Positions 269-57,837 of a stretch of 64,000 nt of DNA are shown piece after piece. The stretch lies in NCBI GenBank assembly GCA_029953675.1, contig JAMWBK010000012.1, positions 186,001-250,000 on the forward strand, given 5' to 3'. The first letter of the stretch is position 1. Every line of letters begins with the position of its first letter. Source of the DNA: Rhodosorus marinus CCMP1338 (lineage: Eukaryota; Plantae; Rhodophyta). A model generated the notes under the pieces. The model did not search any database and was not told where the DNA came from. It saw only the letters and a list, made by a program, of their open reading frames with translations. Made by a program: the position numbers and the translations under genes.

Positions 269-1890
269 AGGTGAAAGAACTCACTATGTCTCCTGTCTGG
301 GGGTCTGCAAATGCATAGATGCCGTCATCATGGCAAAGCACTGTGCAACAGGGGTTTCGGGTCAAGACATTCCCAATGAATAGTGTAGACTATCAGCTTC
401 CCGCTGAGGGCAGAGAAAACTTGTAGAGGTACCCCTACCAACTCCATCGTCACCGGATGAACTCCGTCCGTATCAGGTTCTCTCGAACTCTCTGTCGAAA
501 TGTCCACCGGGAAGAGCTGGATCGGCGGCGGATCACCCGTTTTGTCTGGCAAACCCATGAGACCACTGACTTATTCTTTCCTTCACCAATGTAGCACAAA
601 ATACAACCGTCGTTTCACTCAACTAGAAGAATTCCAGACTCGGAACCAGGATCCAACTGGCAAGCTCTAGTGACGAACTTTGATGGCGAATTCTAATGGC
701 GAAATCTAGTGGCGTCCTCTAGTTTGTTTCTCGTTCCGAGGGCGGAAATCTTTTCGTCGGAGTGGAACGACGGCTTTATATTGTGATATGTTAGTAATAC
801 ATTGTGATACAGTGGTGAAGGAAAGACTAGTTCAGTAGTGCCTCCCACTGTGGAAGAACTGTATACGCACGCGACAACGAAGGAAAAACTCCGTGAAGTT
901 GCTGTCAACACACCGAGGGCATTGTGGTTAACACGACGGAGTCACGCGAGATGCAACAATGTCTAAAAGACCGAAACATTTGATGATCAGCGGTGCAAAC
1001 CGATGAGACAGTGTGCCAAGTCCCGAAAAGTTGGATGAGTCAGCGCGTCAGTGTACTGAGACTCGTTGAGTCGGCGCATTGAACCAGCGGCCGCACCAAG
1101 ATATTGTGCAAGCGCTGGAAAATTTGGGCAGCCTGAGGACAAGGAATAGAAAAATCAAGATATTCACTACTGCGAGATGCCAGGTCAGTGGCTACCAAAT
1201 CTGCCATAGGCTGGGTAACAGGTGTTTCATCATCGTCATCAAGCGCCCGAGCAACAGGCAAAGGAACCTCTTAGTCCACCTCGCATTCCGTACCAAACGC
1301 ATGTAACCGTAGATATTGAAATAAAAGCTGGTCGCATGCATAGGCGACGGGTACACGGCCGCCTTGCCCAGCGCACAGGACGCCAACAGGCGGGCACCAA
1401 AATCTCCGGATGCCACTATGCCACTGAAAACAAGATAAGGTGCATCCCGCTCGGCAGGTAAGGCGGGGGGAGACCCAGATATGGACGTATTCCCATTCGT
1501 AGCTCGAAGTCCGCTGGTCGAGGGTAGGCCGAAATCACGGGGAAGCACTTGGAGCTCAGATTACCGCTCAAGCTCCGGAAAAGGGCCAAGGTACAGGGCA
1601 AAGGCGAGCATCGACCCCGGAGGGTGGCATGTGAATTCCGATTTTTTCCCATACACAGCATTTTTTTGTATTAGATCAGCACCCGTGAAGATAAGGAGTT
1701 TCATTTCACGATAGTCCATTGGGTGGTCATATTCCAGCTAGCAGAAAGATCGCTTTACTAGCCACCATTAATCCACAAGCGTGCATCATCCAGAAAGTCG
1801 GTGGCATCTCAACGAAGCATTGCGTTATCCCCAGTACTGCCATTAAGCATGGCATCACGAGTATTGGCATAAATGTCATCACATAGCATA

Positions 1891-3264
1891 TTAGAATGAA
1901 ATAATGTCATCACCTTCGCCGCCAAGAATATAGTCCACCCCATCACCGCCCGTAATTGTGTCATCCCCAGCGCCGCCAAAAATTTCGTCATCCCCGTCGC
2001 CGCCAAAAATCGTGTCATTATCAGCTTCGCCGTAGATCGAGTCAAACCCATCTTCGCCTTCGATAAAGTCGTTGCCTTGGCCCCCAAAAATTCTGTCATC
2101 ACCTTCACCACCGAAGATCTCGTCATCTCCACCCAAACCATAAATAGTGTCGTTGCCCTCGTACGCATAGATTAGGTCAGGCCCGTCCGAACCAAATAGG
2201 ATGTCGTCTCCAGGACTTCCAGTGATAATGCATGCGCACGAGCCACTGCGCAGCACACCCTGGCGCAGTTCGAGCGAGGTAAGGGAGAATTCACCAGAGG
2301 TCAGTCACGGTTTACCCACTCCCAGTCCCAGTAATCAATACAGGCAACTACTCACCGCCGGACAGTCGTAGTTTCCGAAATCTGCAAGCTTAATGCATTC
2401 CCCGTTGAGGAGACAGTTTCCCTCGCCAGCCGCGCAACCACAGGTGCAAAATTGTGTATCTGGGTCCGCGATCTGTGAGGTAAAATCGTTAAGGCAGCAA
2501 TCGCTTTCAGAACGCGGTTCGAAGGAGTAGTGTAGCCGAATAAAGGCTACGGGTTAGGCAAGCGTCCTCACCACGACATCGCCGAGACAATTTCCCAATG
2601 GCAAATATTCTTCCTTGGAGATGCAAATCGGCCCGCTTGCAGTGTCTAGCAAGCAAAATCCGATAGGACCGCAGCCGCACATAACCGGAAGCTCACATAC
2701 CGGAACGTCGGGTCCATCGGCGACTCTGAGCTCACATGTATCGTCTGGAGCGATCTCTGCCCTGAACTCCTCACCATCTGCTCCCTTGAGAATGGCGTGG
2801 CCGACCATTAAAAGAGAAGAATTTTCGCAACATCCCATCTCATCCGCCACCATCTCGTCTTGACATATGACCAAGCTCAACCTGTTCAATAAAGTGCCCT
2901 CCGGCTCGCCCCTCTTGACCACGACCTTGGCAGTATTCCTCCGGTTGCGGTATTCCACTGGTTCCGGGATGAGCTCCTTCTTCGTGAAGATCCCCCCCCT
3001 AATGCTCACCAAGGAGAAAGAGTCAGCCGCATCGAATTCCATCCGCACGCATAGTGGTTCCTGCTTGGGTTGGACCAGAACCGTGAGAGTGCCGACCTTT
3101 TCTCCGTTGAAAACGAGGTCTTTAGCAAACCCCTCCACACTCTCAAGAAGCAAACCGTTGGTCACGGTGACATCCGCGCATGTCGCGGCGCCCTTGATAT
3201 CCGCAGAAACCGCGCAGATAAACAGTACCCCACAATACCAAACCACCGCCTTCATATCTTCCAC
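1891..3264 (-). CDS. Secreted protein: signal peptide, unnamed Cys-rich domain, Cys-rich linker, then 12 RTX-type Ca-binding nonapeptides. Exons 3264-2572, 2472-2356, 2259-1891
   Basis: Hydrophobic N-terminus [18 protein letters not shown]. Two phase-0 GT-AG introns (2571-2473 GTGAGG..CACAG; 2355-2260 GTGAGT..CTGAC..CCAG) join the ORFs in frame. GGxGxDx(I/L)xG repeats follow. Confidence 0.8.
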
Positions 3265-3916
3265 GAGCCGGGAAAGAAATACTTCCTACAGACGGATACA
3301 ACACTGATGATACCAAGCAAGAACAGAGAACAAACCCAAACCCCTCGCTCCCTGCTCGACAGATGGCCTCTCCACCTCTCCAACATACTCCCCACCACCA
3401 CCGACAGCGCCAACTCCAGGGTAATAGGCTTTCTACATCATCACTACAAAACTCCCTCGCTTGGATGTTTTGAGCAGAACGAGGCTCCGCAAGTACATTC
3501 TGAAGGAGCGGCAGCAGGTCCAAACGGTTTTTTCACAATATGTTTACCTTCCCTTTTTGCTCGAAAAACGTCAAAAAGCAATCTCCACTCTCACAACTTT
3601 CAATCTACACAGTGCTCCAACTCGTACATTCACCCCCTTTTGCCATTCTCTTTCATCCTCTAAACAAATTCATTCTCTAAACAAGTTCATTCTTTCTTTC
3701 ATCTTCATTTGGGAAAAAAATCTATTTGTAACCCTCACCACTACACACAGTAGAGTACGATCATCAATCTAAATTAAACAAATTCACTCATTTACTCAAC
3801 AGGGTCCTGACTAGAGTATTGTTATCTCAAGGATTGTTACCCACCCCCCTGCTGTTGAAGTTTTTGAAGGGTGGTGATGAGACTGAGCTAGTGCTTGATG
3901 AGGGGTGTAGTGATGA

Positions 3917-4046
3917 CACTAGGGTTGTGCCCAGAGGGTCAGGTTTTTCGCTGTTTACCCCTCTAAACCCGCCCTGTTTTCGCGGGTTTAACCACTTCTG
4001 GGTCGTAAACAGCGAAAAACCCGACCCACTTGGCACAACCCTAGTG
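3917..4046. mobile_element. 130-bp MITE-like foldback with 42-bp terminal inverted repeats
   Basis: 3917-3958 is the reverse complement of 4005-4046 with 3 mismatches; TA or CTAG at both ends is a possible TSD. Confidence 0.65.
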
Positions 4047-4457
4047 AAGAAAACTAAACAACAACCGCCTCTGACCTCTACACCCCCTTTTTTACTGAAT
4101 GAAGTTTTTTTGGGCTAGTCCGTCTGATAGATTTTCAAGAACAGAGGTCCGTTCCCGTTCCGATAAAGGTCTCCGATAAATCGTTCCATAATCAATCAAC
4201 ATTATTCCGATAATCAATCATCTCTGGACAAGCCATTGAATCATGATTACTTCTTGGCGTAAGCAGCTCCTCTCGTCCTGTGTCTTGCATTCACGATCAC
4301 CCCTGATATCACATGCGGGCGCACCCCAATCCATCCCATAGGATTGGGCAGATGTGGAATTGGCATGCTTCTACGTAAAGTAGAGCGAACCTCCATGGAG
4401 CTCGAGACAACCAGTCCGGGGTAACGACCAAATTTTTTGCTTGTTGAGAAGATACTA

Positions 4458-4515
4458 ATTCGATATTTGCTTTGTCAAAATAATATTCGATATTTGCTTT
4501 GTCAAAATAATATTC
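4458..4515. repeat. 27-bp tandem duplication ATTCGATATTTGCTTTGTCAAAATAAT x2
   Basis: Two exact adjacent copies. Confidence 0.9.
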
Positions 4516-5719
4516 TATTATTATTTTTCCATGAAGTGCTCCTACTAAGAATACAACTAGGATCAAGGGGTCGGTAATACCACGAAAAAAAATACGAACG
4601 CAAAAAAGTGCCAAAAAATGTAAAAACTTTGTAAAAACTTTGTAAAAAATATAGAACATTGTCAAAGTGTAAAACACTATGAACTGAGCAAAATACTTTA
4701 GGAAAGCTCAGAAACCACTGTCTATAGCGGGTTGAGATTTGGAGTCTGAGGACAATGATGACCTACACACCCCCACAAGCTAAAATATGTGAAGTTCCCG
4801 TGCTTTTGAGAACCTCTGTATGTCTTTTCTTTTTTTTTATTGTGACCAGGCTATTGGAGTGCTTTTGGGTGCCGTCTATACGTAAATGGATGATTCTAGA
4901 GTCAGTCTGTCAGTGATAAAAATGGTCAAAAGTGTAAAAAAATGCAAAAACTTGATAGAAATAAAAAACTGTAAAATTCTCAGGCGAGTACAACACGAAA
5001 TTGTCGTCCCCTCCCCACCCCCTCCCCCTCCCGATTTGGATATCGGATAGGGAGGGGTGGACGGGCTGGCTTAGTGGCTGCTTGCTCATGGATTCCGAAA
5101 GAACAGTAAAGCGACTTCTGTAGTAAAATCTTGAGCGATAATGTTTGTCCCAGCTCTTTTCCGAGTCCTTCGACAAGCTGATCTGGTTTCTCCCCCCTCC
5201 AAAAAACCATATCTCCGCGGAGACGTCGCTGGCTACCCCTTTTAGAGCGAGGAACTTTTCCTTCACGAATGAATTAATGTATTACCACTTATTGCGACTG
5301 CGAACCGTCTGAAAGTAATATTTGGACGATATATTTTATTAATTCGAAAATCAATATATCTATCCATGAATTCATATATTTTATAACTGACACGTGGGTT
5401 TCTCAGTTGGTTGAATTAATTTCTCTCAAGTTTTCCATGTATATTATACAATCTTGAGCCTTGGATCCATTCGTTCGTTTCGGATCTTATGCTTTTCGGA
5501 AGCGCGAACTCAGACCCTCCTCGCACCTACACGTTCTCTTTCTTTTGGAACGGCCTTTTTGCCCAACGGGTTTTTTTGGGGTTGAGCGGCCACCTTTTTC
5601 CCCAACGGCTTTTTTTTTTTTTGGAGAACGTTGTGTACGGACAACGGAACAACGGCGGATGGCAATCGCTTTTTATTGAAATGCGCATGACGATGGAATC
5701 ACCGGTATAAAGTTTGAAG

Positions 5720-6110
5720 GACTTCGTTTAATCGGAGACTGAAGAAAAGACCCCGAGGGAAAAAAAAAAAAAAAAGACTAAGCGCGTCGAAGATTCGCGC
5801 CCCTGCAACATCAAACAGCGTGTTCATACGCCACAGCAAGAAACCTAAACGGGTAAACAACGAGGACATACGGTCGGGGCGTCCGCGGAACACCTCCCGA
5901 AGCCAACGAGAACCAACGAAACCCAGAAACCCAAAACACTCAATGACCAGAGGTGCCAGGCAATGAGCTAGAGCCGAAACACGAATGCCTGGGGAAGACA
6001 AAGCCCCCGCATATTGTAAAGTTTGAGGCAGACTACTACGGAAGCGTCCCACCCGCTGCCTAGGTCTGCATACTTTTTGTACCTAGTAGGCTGCTGATTC
6101 GCAATCATCC
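5720..6110 (-). mobile_element. Diverged family B 3' remnant
   Basis: Translates to YAGALSSPGIRVSALAHCLAPLVIECFGF; has the B-type U-tract/CCCTCGGGG 3' UTR. Confidence 0.85.
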
Positions 6111-6149
6111 TGCGTAGCGCTTAAGTCTACGTTAGTGAATAATTTTGTT

Positions 6150-6940
6150 GCGCCACACTCGTCTCAAGTACATGTCTCAAGTACATCGTAAGCGAATGTT
6201 TAACTCGGGTAGGGCATACGGTTGCGGTGGAATCGGAACTACCCAGATCGGTCTCGGATACGGCGCCGCCCCGCTGTATCGCAGATCTTCTTGTCTCAGA
6301 CCCTGCCGCCCGACGCTCAGCATATGTTGACCTCGCGATTATATGCCCTGTGGCGAGCACCCACCTGACGACTGCCGTCCGCCGCCGAGGGGCAGCCGCT
6401 TCGGCTCTCCGACGAGTGAAGGAACGACGGTATGCTGAGAGCATGGTCAGTCTGCCCTACGCCGAGGGTCGCTCCCACCGGTTCCAGCTTTTCATTGTGG
6501 AAAGCTTTGGTCATATGGATAAGTCGGGTTTAGGGTGGTTGCGGAAATGTTTCGCTGAGCATCCTACTGAGTACTTGGCGCTTTTACGGCGTTTGAGTGC
6601 CGCCCTGTGGCGATATTCTAGCAGCATGCTTGCCGAGGTGCGCCATCGGCGCCTGGGTTTGCACGCTTCCCTCCCTAGTTCTTAGTTACTCTTCACGCCT
6701 TGCGTCCCGCTTCAGGCTATGCTAGTCAAGTTGCGGAAATGTTTGACTGAGCATCCTGTTGGATACTTGGAACTTTTGCAACGCTTAAGTGTCTCTCTGT
6801 GGCGATATTCGAGCAGCATGCTTGCCGAGGCGCGCCATCGGCGCCTGGGTTTGCACGTTTCCCTACCTAGTTCTTAGTTCCTTTTCACGGTTTGCGTAGC
6901 GCTGTAGGCTATGCTAATAAAGCCAGTCTAGTAAAGTCCA
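6150..6940 (+). mobile_element. Two head-to-tail family A2 3' fragments
   Basis: RLE motifs ADLL/YVDL/KERRY; stem-loop plus tail at about 6705-6728 and 6893-6940. Confidence 0.9.
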
Positions 6941-6945
6941 GCGTA

Positions 6946-7407
6946 GTTGTTGTCGAGGATTGGGGTTTTGTTTCTTTTTCGGTCGCGAGCGTGTTCGTTT
7001 ACGGGAAGCGCTTCCTCTGGTACGCCTTCCCCTCGATTTTCCGCGGGGCGTCGTTTGCATTTGCAACTTAAGGAACGACGGTATGCTGAGAGCATGGCCA
7101 GTCTGCCTTGCGCTGAGGGTCGCTCTCACCGGTTCCAGCCATTCATTGTGGAAAGCTTTGGTCACGTGGATAAGTCGGGTTTAGAGTGGTTGCGGAAATG
7201 TTTTGCTGAACATCCTACTGAATATTTGGCGCTCTTGAGGCGTTTAAGTGTCTCCCTTTGGCGATATTCCAGCGACATGCTTTCCGAGGCGCGCCATCGG
7301 CGCCTGGGGTTGCATGCTTTTCTCCCTAGTTATTAGTTCATCTTCACGCCTTGCGTAGCGCTTCAGGCTATGCTAGTAAAGTCCAGTAAAGTCCAATAAA
7401 GCCAGTC
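6946..7407 (+). mobile_element. Internally deleted A1 mini-element (5' end of about 122 nt fused to 3' end of about 340 nt)
   Basis: 6946-7068 matches the 5' end of the 49677 copy; 7069-7407 matches the A1 3' end with tail. Confidence 0.85.
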
Positions 7408-7670
7408 AAGTCGGGTTTAGAGTGGTTGCGGAAATATTTCGCTGAACATCCTACTGAGTACTTGGCGCTTTTACGGCGTTTGAGTGCCGCCTTCTAGCGA
7501 TATTCTGGGCTTTACTAGCATAGCCTGAAACGCTACGCAAACCGTGAAATATTCGAGCAGCATGCTTGCCGAGGCGCGTCATCGGCGCCTGGGTTTGCAC
7601 GCTTCACTACCTAGTTCTTAGTTCCTTTTTACACCTTGCGTAGCGCTTCAGGCTATGCTAGTAGCCCTTT
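7408..7670 (+). mobile_element. Short family A 3' fragments including a small inverted 3' tip (7508-7545)
   Basis: Identity to A 3' ends; GGCTTTACTAGCATAGCC inverted. Confidence 0.8.
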
Positions 7671-7794
7671 CTTTGCGCACGGGCAATGTCTCTCAAATGA
7701 GATTCTACCGATGAGCGACTATTGCTGGTTGAAAACTATTCCAACCGCGCCCGTTCACTACATGTGACCGTGGCAATTTTTGGCTACAACTCTC

Positions 7795-9030
7795 CCCACC
7801 TCTCGCACTTGTGGTTAACCACTCTACCGTCGTCATTGAGTCATCGTCTCGATGCTTTCCAGTTCCGTTCTGCCGCACGGATCTATCTCGGTTTGCCACA
7901 GGCTCCGTGGCACTCTAATCGGCCGTCTTTCTGTCAGGGATGTGAGAGTCGGATTGACGCTTGTGGCTACCACTTCCTGGGTTCCTGCGGACTGTTGAGA
8001 GGTCTTCGTACGAGGCGTCACACTCGCCTCAAGTACATCCTCAGCGAATTTTTGACTCGGATAGGGCATACGGTTGAGGTTGAGTCGGAACTGCCCAGAT
8101 CAATCTCGGACTCTGCACCGCCCCGTTGTATAGCCGATCTCCTCGTCTCCGACGCTGCTGCCAGACGCTCAACATATGTGGACCTTGCGATTACCTGCCC
8201 CGTGGCCAGCGCCCACCTCACCGCAGCCGCCCGCCGCCGGGGGGCCGCGGCTTCAGCCCTTCGAAGAGTTAAGGAACGACGGTATGCTGAGAGCATGGCC
8301 AGTCTGCCTTGCGCTGAGGGTCGCTCTCACCGGTTCCAGCCATTCATTGTGGAAAGCTTTGGTCACGTGGATAAGTCGGGTTTAGAGTGGTTGCGGAAAT
8401 GTTTTGCTGAACATCCTACTGAATATTTGGCGCTCTTGAGGCGTTTAAGTATCTCCCTTTGGCGATATTCCAGGGACATGCTTTCCGAGGCGCGCCATCG
8501 GCGCCTGGGGTTGCATGCTTTTCTCCCTAGTTATTAGTTCATCTTCACGCCTTGCGTAGCGCTTCAGGCTATGCTAGTAAAGTCCCTGCCTTGCGCTGAG
8601 GGTCGCTCTCACCGGTTCCAGCCATTCATTGTGGAAAGCTTTGGCCACGTCGATAAGTCGGGTTTAGAGTGGTTGCGGAAATGTTTTGCTGAGCATCCTA
8701 CTGAATATTTGGCGCTCTTGAGGCGTTTAAGTGTCTCCCTTTGGCGATATTCCAGCGACATGCTTTCCGAGGCGCGCCATCGGCGCCTGGGGTTGCATGC
8801 TTCCCTCCCTAGTTATTAGGTCATCTTCACGCCTTGCGTAGCGCTTCAGGCTATGCTAGCAAAGTCCAATAAAGCCAGTAAAGTCCAGTGTCTCTCTGTG
8901 GCGATATTCGACCAGCATGCTTGCCTTGGCGCGCCATCGGCGCCTGGGTTTGCACGCTTCCCTACCTAGTTCTTAGTTCCTTTTCACGGTTTACGTGGCG
9001 CTGTAGGCTATGCTAATAAAGCCAGTAAAG
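7795..9030 (+). mobile_element. Head-to-tail string A1 (7795-8585), A1 (8586-8888), A2 (8889-9030)
   Basis: CCHC finger and RLE ORF 7722-8537; each tail runs directly into the next truncated 5' end. Confidence 0.92.
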
Positions 9031-9162
9031 CCATCATCCACAGACGGGGAAGGAGGTTGGCAAATTGCTCTTAGAATCAAGGTCGACTGTTTTATTTCCG
9101 ATGGAATCAGCTACAGGACATGATACATTTTGCCCCAGGGGGAGGCGGATTCAAGGCTATGC

Positions 9163-11223
9163 CTAGCAAGCAACGGGAACCTCGCAAGAATTGGGGATTT
9201 TACAGGTTTTTTCGACGTTGCAAGTCTTAGGTACGTTGCAGGAGTTAGGAACGCTGCAAGTTCTGGGGACATCGCAGGTCTTGGCTCTCTTACAATCTCT
9301 GAAGAGGCTAATGACGCAGCCGATGATGGTCTCAACTCCGCATATGGATGCGCTTGTAATCGTGTCAAAACCACATTGAGCTCCGCTGGTGACGACTTCC
9401 GTACCACATTGTGCTGCGCTCGTCACAAATTCAGTTCCGCATTTAGCAGCAGATGTGACCAATTCAAACCCACATTCGAGGCCGTCAGTTACGATCTCTG
9501 TTCCGCACTGCAACGCATCCTCAACAATCTCTGTTCCACAAAGAACCACACCCGAGGTAACCCACGACTGGAGCTCCGAGGATAGTTTACCAAATACTGT
9601 TTCCAAAAAGGCAGCAGTGCTCTGTACAGTCTTGTTGCTGAATGCGATGGCACTCCCCGCTCCATCGACCAAGGAAGCTGCTACCACCTCACCCGCTGAC
9701 TCGAAGAAGTCGGACGTCTCCCGCATAATCCAAGTTGCTCTCCCTGCAATGATCTCCACTGCTGCCGAGAGGAAAGTTATGACAGATCCCGCATGGACCT
9801 TGCAGCTGAACTTGTCCCGGCTATAGTCGTAGACACACTCAATCTTCAAGTTTACGGCGGACGTCAGCGCAGCTGCAAACATGATCTGCACCTCCTCAGT
9901 GCTCAGCGCCAGGCCGAACTCGAGCGCGTCGGTGTCTAACTCATCGATATTATCAAGCAGCTCTGTTACCTCACCGTCAAGGTTTAGACCAGGAACAATG
10001 CTCATGAAGGAGAGCGGGGCCTCTAAAGCATCGAGGATGGCCGGCCCAAGTTCTTTGATGACCTGGAGTGCCGGATTACTCGCGTTTGCACCCAGATAGA
10101 ATCCTGGTAGCATCCGTGTCCCCAATGCGGTAGTCTGCTCAAAGCTCGTCGCAAACGCCGAGAACTCGCTCAGTTCTTGTGTAGGAATGTCAGGAAGCAC
10201 GTTCTTGGTGATCTGCTCTAGCTCCATCGCATACTCGATTTGTCCACGCATGAAAACCGAGAGGTTGAGGCCTTTGGCGCTGTTGAGGATATCCTGTCCA
10301 ATGTCGTCATTTCCAGGTTGGAAAACAGCGATTCTGTTGGTGAACGACTGTTCGGAGCCCTCTGCAGATACAACTCTTTCTAGGAGACCGCCGATTGAGA
10401 TGATCTCAGGAAGTCTGAAGATATCACGAGAAATCGCCATCTCAAGTCGATCATGATATATGCCCTTGAGGGCCAACGTCTCAACTCCGTTCCTTCCAGT
10501 GTAAACCTCTCTATCAGCAGTAAAGGCGTTGCTCAATGAGACTCCCGCCGACACGCTATCCAAAAAGGCCTGTGCGCCTACCGCAAGTACGCCACTCACA
10601 CCACCAGTAGCTGCTAGAGCAGCTTTGCTCCCCAACAGACATGAAATCAAGTTATTGTTGAGTGCAATCGAGACGCTGGGTAGGTCGTTGCAATCCAAGC
10701 TAAAAGCGAAGCACATCGACATCCTTTCTGTCTCGGGTAGATTGGGGCAGATAGAAGAGATCGCGGGTAGGTTGAACGCCACCATCGTCCAGTTCTCCTC
10801 TTCCCCAAGTGGGAGCACATCGCAGCCGCTGTCAACAAGATGCACCTCATCTGAAATCTCGCTTCCGTCAAAATCTCCGAGGCACAGGGGACTTCCCAAG
10901 AGGTCTTCCGATATGCCAGCACTGGTGTTCGCCGCATCAATCAAGTTGTTAACAGCTTCCTTCATCACAGCCTCCACCAGATCATCAACTACCTGAGTCC
11001 CGGTATTAAATTCGATCCTGTTCACAGTTTCGACCAGCTTGTTCTGAAGCTCATCCAACGTGGTACACCCTAGAGTTGTCCTCACACTGGCCGGAAAAAT
11101 TCCTTGTAGTGGGCAAGTCTGTCTCTCAGCAAATTTCAACGTTGGGTCTAGGACAGGTATGCCTGAGCACATCCCCATGAGTCCCAACATCCATACCGCC
11201 ACAAGTGCTCCTCGCCACATCAT
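9163..11223 (-). CDS. Intronless predicted secreted/surface protein of about 686 aa with C-terminal 11-aa CGTE(I/F/V)VT repeats and 6-aa (K/N)(T/S)CxVP repeats
   Basis: Long open frame; first ATG at 11223 with hydrophobic signal-like N-terminus; periodic Cys repeats. Confidence 0.8.
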   Translation of the reverse strand: MMWRGALVAVWMLGLMGMCSGIPVLDPTLKFAERQTCPLQGIFPASVRTTLGCTTLDELQNKLVETVNRIEFNTGTQVVDDLVEAVMKEAVNNLIDAANTSAGISEDLLGSPLCLGDFDGSEISDEVHLVDSGCDVLPLGEEENWTMVAFNLPAISSICPNLPETERMSMCFAFSLDCNDLPSVSIALNNNLISCLLGSKAALAATGGVSGVLAVGAQAFLDSVSAGVSLSNAFTADREVYTGRNGVETLALKGIYHDRLEMAISRDIFRLPEIISIGGLLERVVSAEGSEQSFTNRIAVFQPGNDDIGQDILNSAKGLNLSVFMRGQIEYAMELEQITKNVLPDIPTQELSEFSAFATSFEQTTALGTRMLPGFYLGANASNPALQVIKELGPAILDALEAPLSFMSIVPGLNLDGEVTELLDNIDELDTDALEFGLALSTEEVQIMFAAALTSAVNLKIECVYDYSRDKFSCKVHAGSVITFLSAAVEIIAGRATWIMRETSDFFESAGEVVAASLVDGAGSAIAFSNKTVQSTAAFLETVFGKLSSELQSWVTSGVVLCGTEIVEDALQCGTEIVTDGLECGFELVTSAAKCGTEFVTSAAQCGTEVVTSGAQCGFDTITSASICGVETIIGCVISLFRDCKRAKTCDVPRTCSVPNSCNVPKTCNVEKTCKIPNSCEVPVAC

Positions 11224-11367
11224 TGTCTTCCTCAAACTCAAAACCCCTCAAAAAGCAGATCCGTCACAACGTGTTTAAGAACTCGATCTCAGACTCCTTA
11301 CTCTTTCTCACTCTGTTTATAATAACCTACGAACAAACTACCACATCAGTTCAGCTCTAGTTTGGCC

Positions 11368-14603: not shown

Positions 14604-15290
14604 TCTGGGTTTATTGGCTGGGTTTATTGGCTGGCTTTATTAGCATAGCCTACAGCGCTACGCAAACCGATAACAAGAACTAAGAACTAGGTAGGGAAGC
14701 GTGCAAACCCAGGCGCCGATGGCGCGCCTCAGCAAGCATGCTGGTCGAATATCGCAACAGAGGGACACTTAAGCGCCGCAAAAGTTCCAAGTATTCAACA
14801 CGATGCTCAGTGAAACATTTCCGCAACCACTCCAAACCCGACTTCTCCACGTGACCAAAGCTTTCCACAATGAAAGGCTGGAACCGGTGGGAGCGACCCT
14901 CAGCGCGAGGCAGGCTGGCCATACTCTCAGCATACCGTCGTTCCTTCACGCGGCGAAAGGCCGAAGCAGCTGCTCCCCGGCGACGGGCGGCAGCCGTGAG
15001 ATAGGCGCTTGCCACAGGGCATGTAATCGCGAGGTCAACATATGCTGAGCGTCTGGCGGCAGCATCGGAGACGAGGAGATCTGCGATACGGCGGGGCGGT
15101 GCCCTATCCGAGACCGATCTGGGTAGTTCCGATTCCACCTCAACCGTATGCCCTACCCGAGTCAGATATTCGCTGAGAATATACTTGAAGCGAGTGTGAC
15201 GCCTCGTACGAAGACCTGTCAACAGTCCACATGAACCTAAGAAATGGTAGCCACAAGCATCGATCCGACTCTCACATCCCTGACTTTGTA
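14604..15290 (-). mobile_element. 5'-truncated family A2 copy with AATAAA(G/C)CC-type tail
   Basis: ORF 14680-15222 with RLE motifs; tail reads TTTATTGGCTGG on + strand. Confidence 0.92.
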
Positions 15291-15314
15291 TAGGTACTTG
15301 ATAAAGTAGTGCGT

Positions 15315-15830
15315 GTGGGCTTTACTGGCATAGCCTGAAGCGCTATGCAAGGCGCGAAAAGGAACTAAGAACTAGGGAGGGAAGCGTGCAAACCCAGTCG
15401 CCGATGGCGCGCCTCGGCAAGCATGCTAGTTGATATTCTAGCACAGGGATGTCGAGGTTAATCACCCTTGGAGTGTCCAACCGTGGTGCGTATAGAACAC
15501 ATTTCGAACGTTGCAGCTTTGCTCCGATGCCCCTCAAGGCCTCCTGGCTCCATAACAGCTCGGTCTTACGGGTTTGTAGCTCACCTACTAACAAAATATC
15601 GTCGTGCACTGCCGCGAGCGTCGACTCAGGGAACTTTCTTCTCAGAGCCCGCAAAAAAGGTGCTAGGGCGAGTGCATGTAGCACCGGTCCCAAGGGGGTC
15701 CCCTTGTTGCACTTCCGTCTTGGCCTCCAGGAACAGGCGGTCGGTGATTAGTTTCGTTGCAGCTCGCCCAGGCCAAATGCAGGGGGGCACTTTCCTCTGA
15801 TTCCTCATACCAAAGGCCAACGTAACCCCA
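15315..15830 (-). mobile_element. RT fragment of a non-A lineage (about 15440-15830, frameshifted) fused to a short A 3' end (15315-15440)
   Basis: EVQQGDPLG / GPVLHALAL / AAVHDDILLVG / LQRSKC are RT motifs clearly different from the A protein. Confidence 0.75.
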
Positions 15831-19454: not shown

Positions 19455-20055
19455 GCCTGAATACTTGGAACTTTTGCGGCGTTTAAGTGTCTCTCTCTGG
19501 CGATATTCGAGTAGCATGCTTGCCGAGGCGGGCCATAGGCGCCTGGGTTTGCACGCTTCCCTACTAGGACTTAGTTCCTTTCACGCCTTGCGTAGCGCTT
19601 CAGACTATGCTAGGTTCCTGAAGAATTGTGGTCCGGCTGAGAATTGGGGTTTTGTTTCTTTTTCGGTCGCGAGCGTGTTCGTTTACGGGAAGCACTTCCT
19701 CTGGTACGCCTTCCCCTCGATTTTCCGCGGTGCGTCGTTTGCTTTTGCAACTACTTCTGTCTTCCGGGTGGGTGTGTTGCGGGGCCTTTCCTATTTGGGT
19801 TGGGTTTGGTCGCTTATTCTCTCGGTGCGGTTTCATATTGGTGGTGCAACGTTTCCTTTGCGCATTCCCTCAGGATGGTAGGGATATCTCCGCGCTCGAC
19901 GGAGCCTCCTCCCAAGGAGGCACTGCCAGGTGGGGGACTCCGTGTTCGCAACAGCTGCGGCACGTTTTCTTCCGAGGTTGACTTGGAAGGCGCTTCTGGC
20001 ACCCAGGCGCGTGCACTACCCTTATCTCCGCTGTCACCGGCCTGATCACGGCTGC
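19455..20055 (+). mobile_element. A2 3' tip followed by the first approx. 420 nt of a family A 5' end
   Basis: Identity to A2 3' end, then to about 49707-50120. Confidence 0.88.
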
Positions 20056-20057
20056 GA

Positions 20058-20890
20058 GTGAAGCGTACGAAGCGCCCCCCTTGCGGCCACCACGTGCCCC
20101 CGCAGTAGCCGGGAGCTGGTGACCACCTGAGGGCTGGTCCAAGAGAGGGAAGTCCACAGCTGCAGTTTTCTCCACACCGGTTGCCGCACAGTCACCACCA
20201 CCATTGCCTCGAGTCCCCGAGCGCTGAAGCGCGTTTTGGCCCGGCCTGCCGCTCCCCAACGTCGTACTGTCCCGCGCAGAAGCAACCGCCCTCGCCTGTC
20301 CCGGGACAGGTTCATGTTGATTGACCTGATGTTGACTGCCTTCAGCCAACGCTGCCACTCTTGGGCAATTCAAATTCTCGTCCGAATTTGAATTTGACCT
20401 GGCCAGCAATCCCGATTCCAGCCCACCTAGCTTCTGGGTGAGCTGAGGGAGCACTCCACGATCACTCGCAGCCGTGATCAGGCTGGTGACAGCGGAGATA
20501 AGTGCACGCGCCTGGGTGCCAGAAGCGCCTTCCAAGTCAACCTCGGAAGAAAAGGTGCCGCAGCTGAGGCGAACACGGAGTCCCCCACCTGGCAGTGCCT
20601 CCTTGGGAGGAGGCTCCGTCGAGCGCGGAGATATCCCTACCATCCTGAGGGAATGCGCAAAGGAAACGTTGCACCACCAATATGAAACCGCACCGAGAGA
20701 ATAATCGACCAAACCCAACCCAAATAGGAAAGGCCCCGCAACACACCCACCCGGAAGACAGAAGTAGTTGCAAATGCAAACGACGCCCCGCGGAAAACCG
20801 AGGGGAAGGCGTACCAGAGGAAGCGCTTCCCGTAAACGAACACGCTCGCGACCGAAAAAGAAACAAAACCCCAATCCTCGACGACAAGTC
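20058..20890 (-). mobile_element. Family A 5' end (about 830 nt, 5' UTR plus ORF1 start), convergent with the previous 5' end
   Basis: Reverse complement of about 49684-50524. Confidence 0.9.
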
Positions 20891-21633: not shown

Positions 21634-22300
21634 GATTTAGATTCCCTTGCGTCCGTTCTTGCGATAATGAATATATAGCGGAATAGTTTTGACTTTTTAG
21701 TGGATATCTATGAACCTTACTCAATTCATTCATTGAATTTCCAACTTGCGATTGACGCAATGAATGCCACCTTCCCCCAACCCCTTTCCCTTCGGTGTTC
21801 CGAAACCATCGCTCTGTTTGAATGTCGTAATTGTGGTGGATTTGGCTTGTGGTCACAACGGTTTTTCTCGTTAGTTGTTTTGGCCCGTAGCCACAACGGT
21901 TTTTGTCGTTAGTTTGGATTCCCTTATGTCCGTCACTGCGACAAATGAATAGGTTTCAGTGGATATCTATGAAACTTATTGAATTTCCAGCGTGCATTGA
22001 GCAACCGCCAGTGTCCGTATACCCCGTGCGTTGAGCAACCGCCAATGTCCGTATACCCCGTGCGTTGAGCAACCGCCAATCTCCGTATACCCCGTGCGTT
22101 GAACAACCGCCAATCTCCGCATACCCCGTGCGTTGGGCAACCGCCAATGTCCGTATACCCCCACTCCTTTCGGTCTTCCGAACCCGTTGCCAACGCACCT
22201 TTTGACTGTCGTAGGGTGGTGGTGGTGTTATGGAGAACTGAAAATAACCAAAAGCGCCTCCTTCACCAAACAACTTTTACACAATTCAGTTCCCTACTTC
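21634..22300. repeat. Unclassified dispersed repeat X, copy 1, containing a 34-bp minisatellite (about 4.8 units, 21999-22160)
   Basis: Colinear with about 24255-25190; unit GAGCAACCGCCAATGTCCGTATACCCCGTGCGTT. Confidence 0.8.
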
Positions 22301-22304
22301 TTAA

Positions 22305-23660
22305 TGCATGGGTACGAACTGAGGCGCTCGAGGACTCTCCCATCGACGGAGTACTCGCCGACGAGGGGGAAGCTAGCCTCGGGTCACCGGTTGCCGATTA
22401 CCCGGGTCTGAGCCGATTGTGGAGCTCGCGCATTTATGTGATTCAACATACCTTCACCTGGGGCCAACACAGTGCCGCTCACGCAATCTTGTTCAACTCT
22501 CCCTTCACACCGCCTACCCTCGCCGCTCGCCTCCACGGCATGGGAGGCCATCTATCACATTTGTGGTTAACGACGCTGCCGTCATCACTGGCTCACCGTC
22601 ATCACTGGCTCACCGTCTGGATGCCTTTCAGTTTCGCTCTGCCGCACGGATTTGCCTGGGTTTACCACAGGCTCCGTGGCACTCTACTCAGCCGTCTTTC
22701 TGTCAGGGATGTGAGAGTCGGATTGATGCTTGTTCTTAGGTTCATGCGGACTGTGGAGAGGTCTTCGTACGAGGCGTCACACTCGCTTCAAGTACATTCT
22801 CAACGAATGTTTGACTCGGGTAGGGCATACGGTTGAGGTGGAATCGGAGCTACCCAGATCGGTCTCGGATAGGACACCGCTCCGCTGTATCGCAGATCTC
22901 TTTGTCTCCGATGCTGCCGCTAGACGCTCAGCATATGCTGACCTCGCGATTACATGCCCTGTAGCAAGTCCCCATCTCACGGCTGCCGCCCGCCGCAGGG
23001 GAGCAGCTGCTTGGGCCCTTCGCCGCGTGAAGGATCGACGGTATGCTGAGAGTATGGGCTGTCTGACTCGCGCTGAGGGTCGCTCCCACCGGTTCCAGCC
23101 TTTCATTGTGGAAAGCGTTGGTCACGTGGAGGAGTCGGGTTTGGAGTGGTTGCGGAAATGTTTCACTGAGCATCCTGTTGAATGCTTGGAACTTTTGCGG
23201 CGTTTACGTGTCTCTCTGTGGCGATATTCGAGCAGCATGCTTGCCGAGGCGCGCCATCGGCGCCTGGGTTTGCACGCTTCCCTACCTAGTTCCTAGTTCC
23301 TTTTCACGGGTTGCGTAGCGCTTTAAGCTATGCTAATAAAGCCAATAAAACGGTATACTGAGAGTATGGCCAGTCTGCCTCGCGCAGAGGGTCGCTCCCA
23401 CCGGTTCCAGCCTTTCATTGTGGAAGGCTTTGGTCACATGGAGAAGGCGGGTTTGGAGTTTATGGGTTGTGGAAATGTTTCACTGAGCATCCTGTTGAAT
23501 ACTTGGAACTTTTTCGTCGTTTAAGTGTCTCTCTGTGGCGATATTCGAGCAGCATGCTTGCCGAGGCGCGCCATCGGCGCCTGGGTTTGCACGCTGCTAG
23601 AATATCGCCACAGGGCAGCACTCAAAGCCGCAAAGGCGCCAAGTACTCAGTAGGATGCTC
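22305..23660 (+). mobile_element. A2 copy (22305-23350) followed head-to-tail by a shorter A2 copy and a small inverted piece
   Basis: RLE ORF 22730-23296; tail AATAAAGCCAATAAAA joins the next copy. Confidence 0.9.
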
Positions 23661-24254
23661 AGCGAAACATTTCCGCATGATTTTACTAGAATGATTGCGT
23701 TGATTTGAAGGTTGCAAAAAAAACAAACCGGTGGGGGACGAAGCAGGTGTTATTGCTCAGAGTGGAAATTTACCAAGCGGGGATCCGATCCTGGACAGGG
23801 GGTCTAAGTGAGTTTAGAGCGAACGTATAGTAGCGGTATTTCGCTGCGGGAGTAGTGGTATTTCGCTGCGGTAGGTAGCGAATAAAGGCTGCGGAGGCTC
23901 AACGACCACGTTGGGAGAAAAAGGGGGAAACGCACTTGCACCCGGGCAGCACGGCCTTCATCTTGGAACAGGACGTGTGCAAGCACACTATGTGCTTCGC
24001 GTTGACTTCAGATATTACACTCGGAAAGTGGATTCTAAATTTCTGTAAGACTCGGGAAAGGTCTTGTCCATTAAGACACTTCCGTAATAGCGGCTCAATT
24101 CCGACGTTGGGAAAAGGGTGAAACGTAATAAAAGTTTAAAAAGTTCTGAAGTAGTAGGGGAAAGCTCTGTGTATACATGTTTCCCTCGAAACCGGAAGAA
24201 AAACGCACTTTTGGCCAACGGTTTTTTTTGGCCGATCGATCCAAACGATATTTG

Positions 24255-25190
24255 CCGTTTATTTAGATTCCTTTTTGTCCGTTGTTGCGAAATTGAATAT
24301 ATAGCGGAATAGCTTTAACCTTTTAGTGGATATTTATGAACCTTACTCAATTCATTCATTGAATTTCCAACTTGCGATCGAATGGTTTAATCGGAGGCTG
24401 AATAAAAAACCCCGAGGGGAAAAAAAGACTAAGCGCGGCGAAGTACTCGCGCCTCCAACATCAAAGCGGCATTCATGCGCCACAGCAGGAAACTTAAGCG
24501 GGTAAACAACGATTGAAGACGGTCAGGGCGTTCGCGGAACAACTCCCGAAGCCAGCGAGAACCAACAGAGTCCATGAACCCAAAGCACTCAATGATCAGG
24601 GGTACCAAGCGATGTGCTAGTGCCGAAGCACGAACACCAGGGGAAGACAAAGCCCCCGCGTATTTGATCTCTTTGCGGCGTCTCATGCTGGCGGCGGCAG
24701 ATCCACGGCGCTCCCCCGCAGCCGGGAGATAACGACTAGCTTGAGGGTTAGGAACAGCAAGATCAACGTATGTGGTACGGCGGCTGTCGTCACAGGTGAT
24801 CACCAGGTCGATCGACGCAATGAATACCACCTTCCCCCTCCCCAACCCCTTTCCCTTCGGTGTTCCGAAACCATCGCTCCGTTTGAATGTCGTAGTGGTG
24901 GTGGTTTTGGCATGTGGGCACAACGGTTTTTTGTCTTTAGTTGGCCTGTAGCCACAACGGTTTTTGTGGTTAGTTTGGATTCCCTTATGTCCGGCTTTTT
25001 TTTTTCATCATTCATATGTCCGGCACTGCGACAAATGAATAGGTTTCAGTGGATATCTATGAATCTTGAAATTGAATCTCCAGCGTGCGTTGAGCAACCG
25101 CCAATGTCCGTATACCCTCTTCTCCTTTTGGTCTTCCGAACTCGTTGCCAACGCACCTTTTGACTGTCGTAGGGTGGTGGTGGTGTTTTG
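24255..25190. repeat. Repeat X copy 2 (single 34-bp unit), split by a family B insertion
   Basis: 24255-24381 plus 24809-25190 reconstruct copy 1. Confidence 0.8.
24382..24808 (-). mobile_element. 5'-truncated family B copy with 7-bp TSD CGATCGA
   Basis: YVDLAVPNP/KEIKY RLE region; CGATCGA at 24375-24381 and 24809-24815. Confidence 0.93.
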
Positions 25191-25421
25191 GTTTGCTTTG
25201 GATTGGTTGGTTTCTCCTGTGTCTGTCGCCACTGATGGATTTAATTCGTTGACCAAGATAAATTTGCTTCTGCTCACAGTATCGCGCTTCCGGTTGTATG
25301 TCGATGGGTATTTGAAAAGAGATACAACAGAATGAGCTGCGGGAATGATCTGAGGCAGAGCGAGAAGTCGCATTGACTATTTTCAAGCGTGTTCGTGGAC
25401 TTCCGGGAAATTGTCTGCGAT

Positions 25422-26874
25422 ATGGGCTCAATACGATTATCAGCGTTGTTTGTTTTGGTGCTGTTTGGATCGGCACTTGGTGGTGTGAGAAGGCCACATG
25501 TGTTTGGTGACGAGAGGCTAGCAATTGGGACGTGCTCCCAGGAAACCGAAAATTTTCTTAAAGTGAATGTTGCATCCCTGGAAGACAAGAACTGTATAGT
25601 GCTCCACCTTTCCCGACGTACGCCCGTAGCCCGCGCGTGCGCTACCAAGGAACCGGACGGTAATTGTATCAAGATAACCATCAGTAGCTCACGTCGGTTC
25701 GCCAAGCTGAAAAGTGTATCGATTGGCTTGTATGGAGCCGGTTTGACCCCACCTGAGGACTCCAGCGCTTACCAGTTTGGTGTGGACAGCGGGAATAATC
25801 CCATGACGACGTCTGAGGTTGAGATCTGCTTAGATCAAATCCCGCGGGGGGACGAGTCGTGCTGCACAGAGGACCTACAGTTTCTTCTGAGTGCTAATGT
25901 GGTGTTGTTGAGAAGAAGGTGGGGAGGGTGGATATATGGAAGAGAGAGGCGAGCGATCCCCCTAGGAGCTGGGAAAAATAACTGCACTCGTAGGCAGGGG
26001 AACAGACACCAATCTGTCTGTTCATTGGAATTGACATGTAGCGAACAGAAGTTCTGCTCCCTGGAAATCCCTTGTGACTTTGGAGACGACGGAGCGCAAC
26101 GAACTAATAACTGCTCAGATATAGGCTTCCCCTCGATTTGTAATGCTGCTTTGTTGGGAGTGGTTGGAGATGAATGCACCTCGACATACTCTTCCAATGA
26201 CGTTGGGGTAAGGAAGAAAATGGAAGCGACAAAATTTCACAGACTCTCAAGAAGATTATTGGAGCTCACCCAGTTGTTCCCATACTATTAGGTTGTTAGA
26301 CGCATTGGGAAGGGCAATGACTGCGGTTGTCAGCTGAAGACTTGCGGATATATGTCAAGGCTGGTCGATGATGAAGGAAAACTCTCATCGGAGTTCCGAA
26401 CTGGAAACGTGGGAGAAGCTTGTGAGTCATTCGACGCGATTGGGGTACGCGCGCAACCCAACAAGAAGATTGTGCCTGGGTACGGAGAATTCGTGAGCAA
26501 ATGTATTTACCAACAACGAGTTTCTCTTTATTTCTTGCTCTTCGCCAGGTCATTTCACAAGACGCAGATCTGAGGAAAGGTTGCCTTTGCGAAGTAGTTA
26601 ATCCCTACTGCTACACCAGACTCGAATCGCAAGAGGACGACTTGTGCTTTTTCAGGTACATGCAGGAAGACTATCCGTGCGAGGTGGGCAATTTAAACGG
26701 GGTGAGTTGAGCTTGAAACTATGCCCACCTCGTGGAGAAAGGAACATGTTTCCTCTCTTGCTTTTGTACAAAAATATATGCTGACTCGACTGGGCTACTG
26801 CTCTGGGTGAACAGATGGTTAAAAAGATCGACCCCGAATCCCCCTCTTCCCAATGCACGTGTCGACCGCTGTGA
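25422..26874 (+). CDS. Secreted Cys-rich protein with the unnamed domain plus repeated Cys modules. Exons 25422-26207, 26292-26444, 26549-26701, 26815-26874
   Basis: Signal peptide MGSIRLSALFVLVLFGSALG; three phase-0 GT-AG introns give one continuous frame ending CTCRPL*. Confidence 0.75.
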
Positions 26875-31114: not shown

Positions 31115-32515
31115 AATGAGGCGAGCATATGAGATTGTAGAGCTATCACGTGAATGGGTGTGCTCAACGGGTGTGCTAGGGTTTTGGATTTCTTGTGGGC
31201 CACGTCATACGGGGTTTCGACGAATGAAATTCACAGGAATTTCAGATAGAAGTCTAGCTGTTAGGGATCTGGAGGAATGTGTAAATGGGGAGAGAGGTTG
31301 TTGTGCGGGTTGCAGTGGTGAGAAACGGGTAGCGAATGTGTTTGTCCGGAGACAATTGCTGGTTCATCATTGGAGAGCGCTTAGATCTCGAGTATGAGCG
31401 TTCATTGGGGATGGGTAGGAATTTGTAGGTATGAAGTGGTATATATTGGGTTCCGAGGGGGGGACAGTTGCTGTGTGTGGGGATGAGGGAGAAAGGAGGA
31501 GAGTAAAAGAGGGTTCTCTGGATCTGAACATTGCTGAGCAACGAGAAAGGTTTCTTTGTTGAGTTTTGAGAACGAAGATGAATCTCGCGTCGCTGGGTTC
31601 GATGAGGTCTTTCCGCCTGCGCGGATCGAGCCTGACTTTGACCAACAATGACAAAAAGATCAAGGAGACGAAGAAGGGCAACAGCATGAATTCAGTTCTA
31701 GGAGAGACGGATAACTGGTTGAGTGGGACGGACGTACTTGGGCATTCCGAGGTGCTCGATAGCGTCACCGGCAGCAGGATCGAACTTTTCGATGATCTGT
31801 GAAGGGACCGCGTCGTACACATACTTTTTACCTCAGCTTAAAATTTGTAGGCTGGGTGGGTGCCTCTTCGCGTGAACAGATTAAATATCAACTTACAATT
31901 TTAGAAAATCGAGAGCCTCTCAATCAAAACGATTTGACATGGCCCAGGACGAGGGAGCATCACCTAGGAAACTCAAGAAAGCGAAACTTATGAGAGGGTA
32001 CCCTTGGATATTGGGCCCTCTGCTTAAAAAAGGCAAGGCACAGGCTTCTAGCCTCTTCAATGAAAAAGAGACGAACGACAAGTAAGAGTGTGGGACGAAA
32101 GGCATGAGCAATGGTTCGGTTGAAAGCCGAGCGTTCAGAATTGGCGTCCGTGGTCCGCTGAAAGCTTCAATCACGGGGGACGATATCCAGCAGATTAGCA
32201 CACTCTCAATGTCATCAAGACCCCAATCCCAAACCTTATTCAATGTCCTCATCAAAAAGTCAAACTAGAACTCCTCAAGCTTGCCCGGCATCCCCTGGCC
32301 TCACATGAGGTGGGTGGGGGGTTGGTGGGCGTTTCTAGTTTTTCTCTGTTAAAAAACCTAGGTGTCTGAGTATCGTAGATTCCGTTGTCCTTACTTTATT
32401 CCGAACCAAGCACACTTGACCGTTTGTAGGATCACTATAGAGACGACTCCAGTCTCTGAGATCTTTCGACTAAGGAAAAACGGTCAGATGCACGCGAACA
32501 AAAACCCTAATCCTA

Positions 32516-49650: not shown

Positions 49651-49676
49651 GAGTCCCAAAAGGTTTGTTTTGGTGA

Positions 49677-57763: not shown

Positions 57764-57837
57764 GAACATAGTGTTGCAAGAAGTCCCTTTTTTTTTTGTT
57801 CCAGAGCTCCTAGAGGTATGGCTTAGAATGCGAGTGC

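Follow-up and report, generated by a model that had tools for sequence, protein, structure and literature searches.

Head-to-tail arrays of retrotransposons without long terminal repeats (non-LTR) are known from Drosophila, where HeT-A, TART and TAHRE are added at chromosome ends without target-site duplications (TSDs). Zepp, a green algal long interspersed nuclear element (LINE) of the L1 clade with an apurinic/apyrimidinic endonuclease (APE) and a poly(A) tail, is clustered once on each chromosome, at putative centromeres; two reports describe nested insertion into existing copies, giving, via 5' truncation, tandem arrays mostly of 3' ends (PMC8226300, PMC3446292). In the CRE clade (CRE1/2, SLACS, CZAR, MoTeR, Cnl1, FoTeR), arrays of full and truncated copies are formed by MoTeR and Cnl1 (PMC8381367; bioRxiv 10.1101/2021.08.11.455996; PMC12857005) and are embedded in telomere repeats or subtelomeres, where telomere tracts separate the copies. 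Here we describe family A, a ~4.8 kb non-LTR retrotransposon with two open reading frames (ORFs), in nuclear DNA of the red alga Rhodosorus marinus CCMP1338. The window, by which we mean the whole stretch of 64,000 nucleotides analysed, covers positions 186001-250000 of contig JAMWBK010000012.1 (assembly GCA_029953675.1), and coordinates count from its first letter unless another stretch is named. Further stretches of the genome were fetched via host proteins, namely L005 (the window extended rightward), L006 and L008 (contig 4) and L007 (contig 1), so that about 140 kb of one genome in one assembly were examined. Family A stands in head-to-tail strings, and we hold it probable, with some reservation, that these were built mainly by serial self-insertion into resident 3' ends. 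Self-insertion and template jumping, which an earlier note on this DNA had offered as alternatives, both operate.

Family A was defined by BLAST of a full-length copy against the window. The reference for subfamily A1, to which all 'ref' coordinates refer, is the copy at ~49656-54358 (+), which begins with CCAAAAGGTTTG, is preceded by a diverged A copy (49415-~49655) stopping at ref ~4685-4689, and is itself cut at ref 4679 by a piece of a second family, B; its lost 3' end was supplied from 8446-8585. ORF1 (49712-51346, +) has no recognisable domain. ORF2 (51574-54360 and beyond, +) carries a reverse transcriptase (RT; RVT_1 in Pfam, E = 2e-13) beginning at about residue 220, then a CCHC motif and a restriction-enzyme-like (REL) endonuclease, with the C-terminal motif CX2CX9HX4C-X9-RHT...E...IAD-X14-D, of which relatives keep C..C..H..C, RHN, AD and D; Pfam found no APE domain in ORF2. 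The nearest database proteins are 30-37% identical, one of them from the red alga Pyropia, and the best sequence matches in PDB are R2 proteins. R2 proteins are also the top Foldseek matches of an AlphaFold model of ORF2 (built on 18 sequences, predicted local distance difference test score 78), with ~1000 aligned columns that span the whole of ORF2 and E-values of 1e-21 to 1e-22, and R2 complexes of target-primed reverse transcription (TPRT) rank ahead of L1 ORF2p. The RT-bearing ORF, a common 3' end with varied 5' ends, the 3' tail and duplications of 6-11 nt are those of a non-LTR retrotransposon; the C-terminal CCHC and PD-(D/E)XK nuclease 3' of the RT, with no N-terminal APE domain found, are those of the REL group. 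Judged from its sequence and predicted fold, family A is an R2-like LINE with an RT and a C-terminal REL endonuclease (CCHC/PD-(D/E)XK).

ORF2 shares with R2, as seen in TPRT complexes (8gh6, 9dou, 9nl2/3), the order of RT, CCHC and PD-(D/E)XK endonuclease, but identity is ~16%, and family A differs in having two ORFs and in being without the N-terminal zinc-finger/Myb region and the 28S rDNA target. An Rfam search gave no 5' ribozyme in the element, and none of the HDV (hepatitis delta virus)-like kind. A REL endonuclease is likewise common to family A and the CRE clade. Compared with the published CRE/SLACS pattern, C[X1-3]C[X7-8]H[X3-4]C[X9-10]RHD/N..E..R/KPD.X12-14.D/E (PMC12857005), the order fits, with X9 for X7-8, RHT for RHD/N and IAD for R/KPD; the same core motifs are also present in other REL clades. 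In contrast to the telomeric surroundings of MoTeR and Cnl1, the target of family A is its own 3' end: no telomere-type repeats between A copies and no spliced-leader or telomeric target were found in the window, where A is flanked by A or B 3' ends or by unique intergenic DNA. No tRNA-derived pieces were found, and the 3' untranslated region (UTR), too conserved and partly coding, gave no readable structural signal in a covariation analysis. Exact look-up of the ORF2 protein of the window returned no record, no genes are annotated over the element, and the contigs of the nearest homologues (P0001, P0003, P0008) are too short or animal, and hence uninformative on strings.

All A copies terminate in GCGCT..AGGCTATGCTA, followed by short repeats of 9-10 nt, and the 3' landmark GCGCTTCAGGCTATGCTA has 22 matches in the window and 0 in JGI metagenome contigs. 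The element's own 5' end is CCAAAAGG. A1 copies (95-99% alike) end in the tail GTAAAGTCCAGT, at times with extra GTAAAGTCCA units; the tail units of A2 (86-98% alike) are ATAAAGCCAG/A, and older variants have the tail GTAAAGCCCAG. BLAST mapped 36 A fragments, or 37 pieces in total with mini-pieces added, and in 22 of the 37 an A 3' end on the same strand lies upstream at a distance of -10 to +60 nt. This is far above chance expectation, as 5000 random placements averaged 0.70 and never exceeded 5. The 14 junctions at which one copy had been said to run into the next (246, 6728, 6940, 7407, 8585, 8888, 16685, 23350, 33468, 36900, 37030, 37686, 44945 and 45050) all exist; at each, an A copy, either complete at its 3' end or slightly truncated there, meets the 5' end of a same-strand A piece. 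Every A locus in the window (9/9) has multiple pieces, with at least nine separate strings between host genes in 64 kb, and strings also occur in L006, L007 and L008, together with solo copies (L006 17107-17412, L007 9546-9875, L008 3807-3877). Because adjoining pieces differ in 5' end, subfamily and sequence, tandem duplication or collapse of repeats does not account for the strings. Divergence is usually greatest in the piece furthest upstream (c0 of the string described below, 33300-33466, 15427-15317 and 49415-49655). Junction counts overstate the number of independent events, since one composite A1/A2 junction has been inherited. The statement that all four full-length 5' ends in the window follow an A 3' end had to be corrected for two of them (~49656 and 20893, - strand), where the upstream copies are cut 48 to ~135 nt short of the 3' end and lack a tail.

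Nesting of A in A is observed at no fewer than 4-6 junctions, where 7-11-nt duplications or the remainder of the host copy stand directly 3' of the insert. An A1 piece (45054-45254, -; ref 4622-4819 with a 9-12-nt tail) lies in the 3' UTR of the A1 copy 45845-45255/45053-44997, with the duplication AGTTATT at 45261-45255 and 45053-45047 and host halves of which one reaches ref 4773 and the other resumes from ref 4763. The tail of the same A1 copy (45845-44997) holds an A2 copy (42034-44942, -; ref 2693-4819), which is flanked by TAAAGCCAATC at 44953-44943 and 42033-42023 and itself carries a family B insertion (43045-42249). A third insert, the A1 piece at 37690-38516 (+; ref 4007-4819 with a 24-nt tail), is nested in an A2-type copy (37033-37689) that stops at ref ~4806 and whose remainder, ATGTAGTAGAGCCC...CCCAG, resumes exactly at 4807 (38517-38550). 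On L006, the 94-nt flank and tail end next to an A1 piece (3721-3899) are repeated with 100% identity at 3627-3720 and 3900-3993, and since this repeat includes the preceding tail end, the priming nick lay inside the resident tail. Wherever a young A1 piece is followed by an older piece (c3/c4, c6/c7, p5/p6 and A1/A2 at 44945), a duplication or a remainder is present. Apart from an inverted mini-insertion at 7506-7548, all A-into-A events fall, in sense orientation, in the 3' end or tail, which in the window account for about 20% of A sequence. Nested insertions thus sit in resident 3' UTR ends and tails, and the target is wider than the tail repeat proposed in the earlier note, since it also takes in the terminal ~140 nt of the element. 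In the window, where the flanks are unique, neither whole-string duplications nor paralogous empty sites are clear.

Breaks in resident copies recur at ref ~4682-4689 (the A1/A2 composite and the point where 49415-49655 stops, which fits a ~7-nt stagger), at ref ~4766-4775 (the AGTTATT event and the point where 21630-20906 stops) and at ref ~4802-4806 (33466 and 37689), with a further break site at CT/AGT (the slash marks the break or junction here and below) at the UTR end, where three nicks fall. Microhomology of at least 3 nt, mostly AGT, is present at the 3' junction in 5/7 resolvable events. Shared nucleotides between tail and incoming sequence, noted previously, are real, although part of them are a TSD or a single inherited composite junction: the AAGTC at 7408 belongs to an 8-nt duplication, AGTCAAGT (6724-6731 and 7404-7411), and the AGT at 8888 and 36903 is one inherited junction, not two events. 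A single target motif, SCTAGT, was considered and rejected, as it explains only the three nicks and other flanks read G/AATATC, giving no consensus; 36 of the 75 SCTAGT sites in the window fall in A in sense orientation. Rejected, too, was a pre-existing tail satellite as target, because 27/37 tail-unit matches, all tandem runs included, follow an A 3' end. The other 10/37 are orphan single units, two of them exact A1 terminal repeats. These two, at ~46645-46654 (a 10-nt unit) and 63305-63321 (15 nt, TSD GTTG), lie in non-A DNA (B-like copies) and are abortive tail-only insertions outside A.

The string at 6016-9033 combines at least eight same-strand A pieces (+), two mini-pieces and one retrocopy of U4 small nuclear RNA (snRNA). 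Its most upstream and most diverged piece, c0 (6016-6134), is an A-like 3' end that matches GCGCTTCAGGCTATGCTA loosely, continues with ~6 tail-like nt to 6140 and has no relatives by BLAST within the window. It is followed by c1 (6141-6724; ref 4262-4819), an old A2-like piece with 80-88% identity to other 3' ends and, at the 5' end, 13 nt repeated in tandem (6161-6173 and 6174-6186). The two copies of AGTCAAGT (left 6724-6731, right 7404-7411), which have the same non-canonical C relative to the tail unit AGTAAAGT, bracket three pieces: c2 (6732-6927), an A2 piece (ref 4624-4819) with tail ATAAAGCCAGT and 91-98% identity to other A2 copies; a 15-nt mini-piece CTAGTAAAGTCCAGC (6928-6942) made of the last 4 nt of the A1 UTR and the terminal repeat; and c3 (6943-7403), an A1 copy with tail, 99% identical to other A1 copies, in which the 5' end to ref 141 is joined at 7068/7069 to ref 4503-4819. 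Such an internally deleted A1 derivative was seen only once. The old piece c4 (7404-7668, including the right AGTCAAGT; ref ~4607-4819) starts with AAGTCGGG at 7408, is split by the inverted 43-nt A mini-insertion 7506-7548 with ATATTC flanks at 7500-7505 and 7549-7554, and ends in the 8-nt tail GTAGCCC(T) (7661-7668). After the U4 retrocopy (7669-7793), which begins at the RNA's 5' end and includes the Sm site AATTTTTGG, come c5 (7794-8588), an A1 piece (ref ~4029-4819) with the constant terminal GTAAAGTCC(AGT), and c6 (8586-8876), an A1 piece (ref 4538-4819) with tail that is nested in the terminal 12-mer of c5. The AGTAAAGTCC flanks of c6 (8576-8585 and 8877-8886) are tail-like and hence weaker evidence. 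The string closes with c7 (8887-9033), an A2 piece (ref 4682-4819) with tail ATAAAGCCAGTAAAGCCA and the junction CCAGT/GTCTCT at 8885-8894.

Traces of template jumping were found as well, in the form of a U4-A1 chimera, 5' tandem duplications and snap-back hairpins. What had looked like a 129-nt 'gap' (7667-7795) is a U4 snRNA copy (Rfam RF00015, 7669-7817, 84.1 bits, E = 3e-17, model positions 1-138, with a good alignment to about model position 126), and U4 is the sole Rfam family detected in the window. A1 homology begins at 7794-7796, so that the 3' side of U4 is joined, with CC microhomology, to the 5'-truncated A1 piece c5. The chimera has the snRNA's own 5' end, the same orientation in both parts and a 5'-truncated LINE part, as in U6-L1 chimeras, and we attribute it to RT template switching, whose signature is a processed U4 copy joined to a 5'-truncated LINE. 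To its left lies the c4 tail and to its right tail-like sequence (9016-9033); a possible GT/AAAGCCA duplication is indistinguishable from tail repeats. Human U6-L1 chimeras and the bi- and tripartite MINE retrogenes of Magnaporthe are comparable, an snRNA with intact 5' end being joined to a 5'-truncated LINE, and in multi-part chimeras, as in A strings, a double switch is hard to tell from a second insertion that entered the 3' end of the first (PMC4476161, PMC2104539). The family A case differs from U6-L1 in that U4 and a REL-type LINE are involved and in being single; in a mammalian survey U4-L1 chimeras were extremely rare, and the listed makers of snRNA chimeras are L1, L2 and RTE (PMC4476161, PMC2104539).

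Tandem duplications at 5' ends measure 13 nt (6161-6186), 15-16 nt (33480-33510) and ~44-47 nt (57674-57764, -, family B). The 32-nt filler at 15285-15316 derives from A. L008 holds two snap-back hairpins (1454-1540), and junction hairpins are of 21-28 nt; internally deleted derivatives are c3 for A1 and 'B-short' for family B. Larger fold-back or zig-zag arrangements of A, reaching ~800-nt inverted 5' regions, were noted at 19638-20061 versus 20056-20879, 23350-23595 versus 23551-23677, and L006 816-2534 and 17716-18550; they suggest snap-back synthesis or recombination between inverted copies and could in principle be artefacts. A composite at 33467-37030 (+), the one with the 15-16-nt duplication at its 5' end, consists of A1 (ref ~1345-4819), GTAACGTCCAGT and A2 (ref 4682-4819). 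Its junction of the A1 terminus with A2 ref 4682, ...GTCCAGT/GTCTCT..., at 36903 (36898-36910), is also present at 8885, in a composite that is 93-95% identical. As the junctions are identical and the 5' truncations differ (ref ~1345 and ~4029), the composite must have been transcribed through and re-mobilised via its A2 3' end.

Under serial self-insertion, new and mostly 5'-truncated copies would enter the last ~140 nt or the tail of resident copies by target priming, every time in the orientation of the resident. The resident 3' end may supply preferred nick sites as well as a primer ending in ...AGT, with which the RNA could pair by its AGU-3' terminus. As every insertion would remake the landing pad, strings would grow. 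Within a single event the RT also switches templates and adds chimeric pieces and perhaps whole segments, which probably yields some of the mini-pieces, fillers and remainder-free cut junctions, and read-through RNAs of existing composites are re-mobilised, as seen in the one case above (A1/A2 at ref 4682). We rate self-insertion the main builder because every young-to-old adjacency is marked and host break sites recur. A stricter version, in which A and perhaps B are LINEs that specifically target themselves, their ribonucleoprotein finding its own 3' UTR or tail DNA and nicking it with a ~7-nt stagger, strikes us as unlikely; it would be guided there either by the 3' end of its RNA, paired to the target, or by protein recognition of the sequence.

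The R2 RT is the classic template-jumping RT and jumps templates in vitro. Had the A RT likewise run off one A RNA onto the 3' end or an internal site of another, bound via its 3' UTR, most of a string could have arisen per TPRT event. We regard jumping as main builder as possible but doubtful. The U4-A1 chimera (7669-8588) demonstrates switching in vivo, LINE chimeras by single and double switches are documented (PMC4476161, PMC2104539), and the 5' tandem duplications, the filler at 15285-15316, the snap-back hairpins, the zig-zag 5' regions and the constant orientation all suit it. So do the unit 6732-7403, with four segments within one 8-nt duplication, and the upstream copies cut with no remainder (33466, 20906, ~49655, 54358 and L006 4091). 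However, the host halves around 45054-45254 and 37690-38516 join exactly (7-nt overlap or none), which is not predicted by one-pass switching. Strings, moreover, mix very diverged with 99%-identical pieces, the old piece c4 bears its own later insertion, solo copies exist (L006, L007, L008), and the A1/A2 junction at ref 4682, identical in two places, speaks for inheritance and not for fresh jumps. Quite improbable, in our view, is a dependence on neighbours as in HeT-A, in which an upstream 3' end gives a promoter or a read-through transcript and strings are selected for, though it can coexist with the other models. Five full-length 5' ends of A1 type (6943, 19625, 49656, 20893 on the - strand and L006 18550 on the - strand) adjoin A 3' sequence or the tag GCTAGTAAA, the re-mobilised composite implies read-through transcripts, and Rfam gave no 5' ribozyme; yet the upstream pieces begin at scattered points (ref 4446, 4624, 4653, and 4047 or earlier) with no common start, and strings of short 5'-truncated pieces would be left unexplained. 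Finally, strings might need no special mechanism and reflect passive pile-up in gene-free havens, DNA-level duplication, unequal crossing-over or assembly error. Repeats make up 15% of this compact and gene-dense genome, so that insertions of transposable elements (TEs) survive mainly between genes (PMC10250338), and the assembly is based on Oxford Nanopore reads, with fold-backs as possible artefacts. Such an origin is nevertheless hardly credible and already largely refuted by the 22 adjacencies where random placement gives 0.7, the near-absolute bias in orientation and in position to the last ~140 nt and tail, the differences between adjoining pieces in 5' end, subfamily and sequence, which exclude duplicates, and the same patterns on three contigs with small TSDs around inserts.

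Several observations weigh against serial self-insertion as the main builder. Target preference rests on about 15 sites, and these yield no single consensus, some non-A flanks reading G/AATATC. Several duplications lie in tail-like sequence, where repeats form easily. At five or more junctions (33466, 20906, ~49655, 54358 and L006 4091) the upstream copy is cut internally with no downstream remainder; nesting needs target deletions there, and template switching accounts for them directly. Cross-family junctions (a B tail followed by A at 56000; an A1 tail followed by a B-short 5' end on L006) mean that recognition is not strictly of the element's own sequence. Divergence, compared among few copies, is a rough measure of age and a poor clock, and selection in a compact 31-Mb genome could inflate clustering, though not orientation or position.

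As the closest functional analogue of family A we regard Zepp, on the strength of the shared behaviour: like Zepp/ZeppL of green algae (Coccomyxa, Chlamydomonas), family A self-nests into same-orientation arrays of 3' ends. It differs from Zepp in being R2-like, with a REL endonuclease and a non-poly(A) tail of 9-10-nt repeats, in its red algal host and in forming several small intergenic strings in the window. The strings also differ from those of HeT-A and TART, lying internal to a contig with host genes on both sides and with duplications around inserts. Family A is a new, previously undescribed element family and its self-stacking a new variant of a known behaviour. LINE target choice and 5'-end completion are poorly understood outside L1 and R2, and here an R2-like element from a barely studied lineage, the Stylonematophyceae red algae, behaves like the unrelated L1-clade Zepp. 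The family offers a compact natural record of what REL-type RTs do in vivo (switching, snap-back, re-mobilised composites) and adds a REL-type LINE, U4 and the red algae to the known range of snRNA-LINE chimeras. Its 3' end and tail are a candidate landing pad that is directly testable. If the element does target itself specifically, the 3' end would be a portable, self-renewing landing pad, and guidance by RNA-DNA pairing would make target choice reprogrammable by altering the 3' end; R2-type proteins are in use for targeted transgene insertion. The islands might then also have a chromosomal role, as proposed for Zepp. The idea of a centromere at this place was rejected, since the window, with host genes between the strings, is no gene-free TE island.

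Family B is a second, related REL-type LINE with the tail (CATT/CGTT)n, present at 54359-56000 and L006 4697-7137; an RT can be read at L006 ~4800-5400, the C-terminus shows homology to A ORF2, and the 5' end CAAAAGGGTCTGTTTCG resembles that of A1 (CCAAAAGGTTTGTTTTGG). It nests like A, L006 7143-7442 being flanked by ATTCC, and forms head-to-tail pairs at L006 7137/7143 and at 31114-30521 (-); cross-family A/B junctions lie at 54358 and 56000. L006 4087-4420, at first taken as nested in a diverged 'A4' copy, was rejected as such a case, as the host copy is family B and the remainder is absent. In the 5' end of the full-length A1 (49686-49713), a 14-nt inverted B tail piece, GATGAATGAATGGT, with the 7-nt duplication GAGGATT around it, is an extremely short B insertion. 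B-short (~340 nt; a 38-nt B 5' end joined to the last ~302 nt) has many copies, among them L006 3627-3720 and 3900-4091 and, in the window, 32515-32813 and 57465-57717, and looks like a SINE (short interspersed nuclear element)-like non-autonomous derivative of B. An A-like 5' end, GGATTAGGGTTTTTGTTC (32513, -), stands head-to-head with a B-short 5' end (32515, +).

The CCMP1338 assembly, made from Nanopore reads, comprises 31.2 Mb with 8392 genes and 15% repeats (PMC10250338). At one locus, the MMETSP strain of R. marinus has ~78% identity to it. The window is interior to a contig of 1,155,867 bp (186001-250000), annotated genes flank the strings on both sides, and host genes for secreted proteins stand between the element clusters. 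Five single-exon ORFs with signal peptides and Cys-rich regions (2554-3264, -; 9163-11241, -; 25389-26291, +; 40051-41526, +; 47727-48446, +), three of which have the motif C.D..(I/M)....CC in common, look like a lineage-specific family of secreted proteins among the TE strings. The ORF at 40051-41526 is the annotated gene NDN08_004870, paralogues of which adjoin A strings on contigs 1 and 4. A pair of PQQ-repeat genes (57838-59751, -, with paralogues NDN08_004872 and NDN08_002131, plus its neighbour) has a paralogue on contig 4, next to that of NDN08_004870, so these neighbourhoods were anciently duplicated. At 21991-22161 a 34-bp unit, GTGCGTTGAGCAACCGCCAATGTCCGTATACCCC, is repeated in tandem in about five copies. 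The sequence flanking it at 22229-22306 is found again at 33042-33119, where another A string lies downstream, and one related unit stands 3 kb off at 25084-25117.

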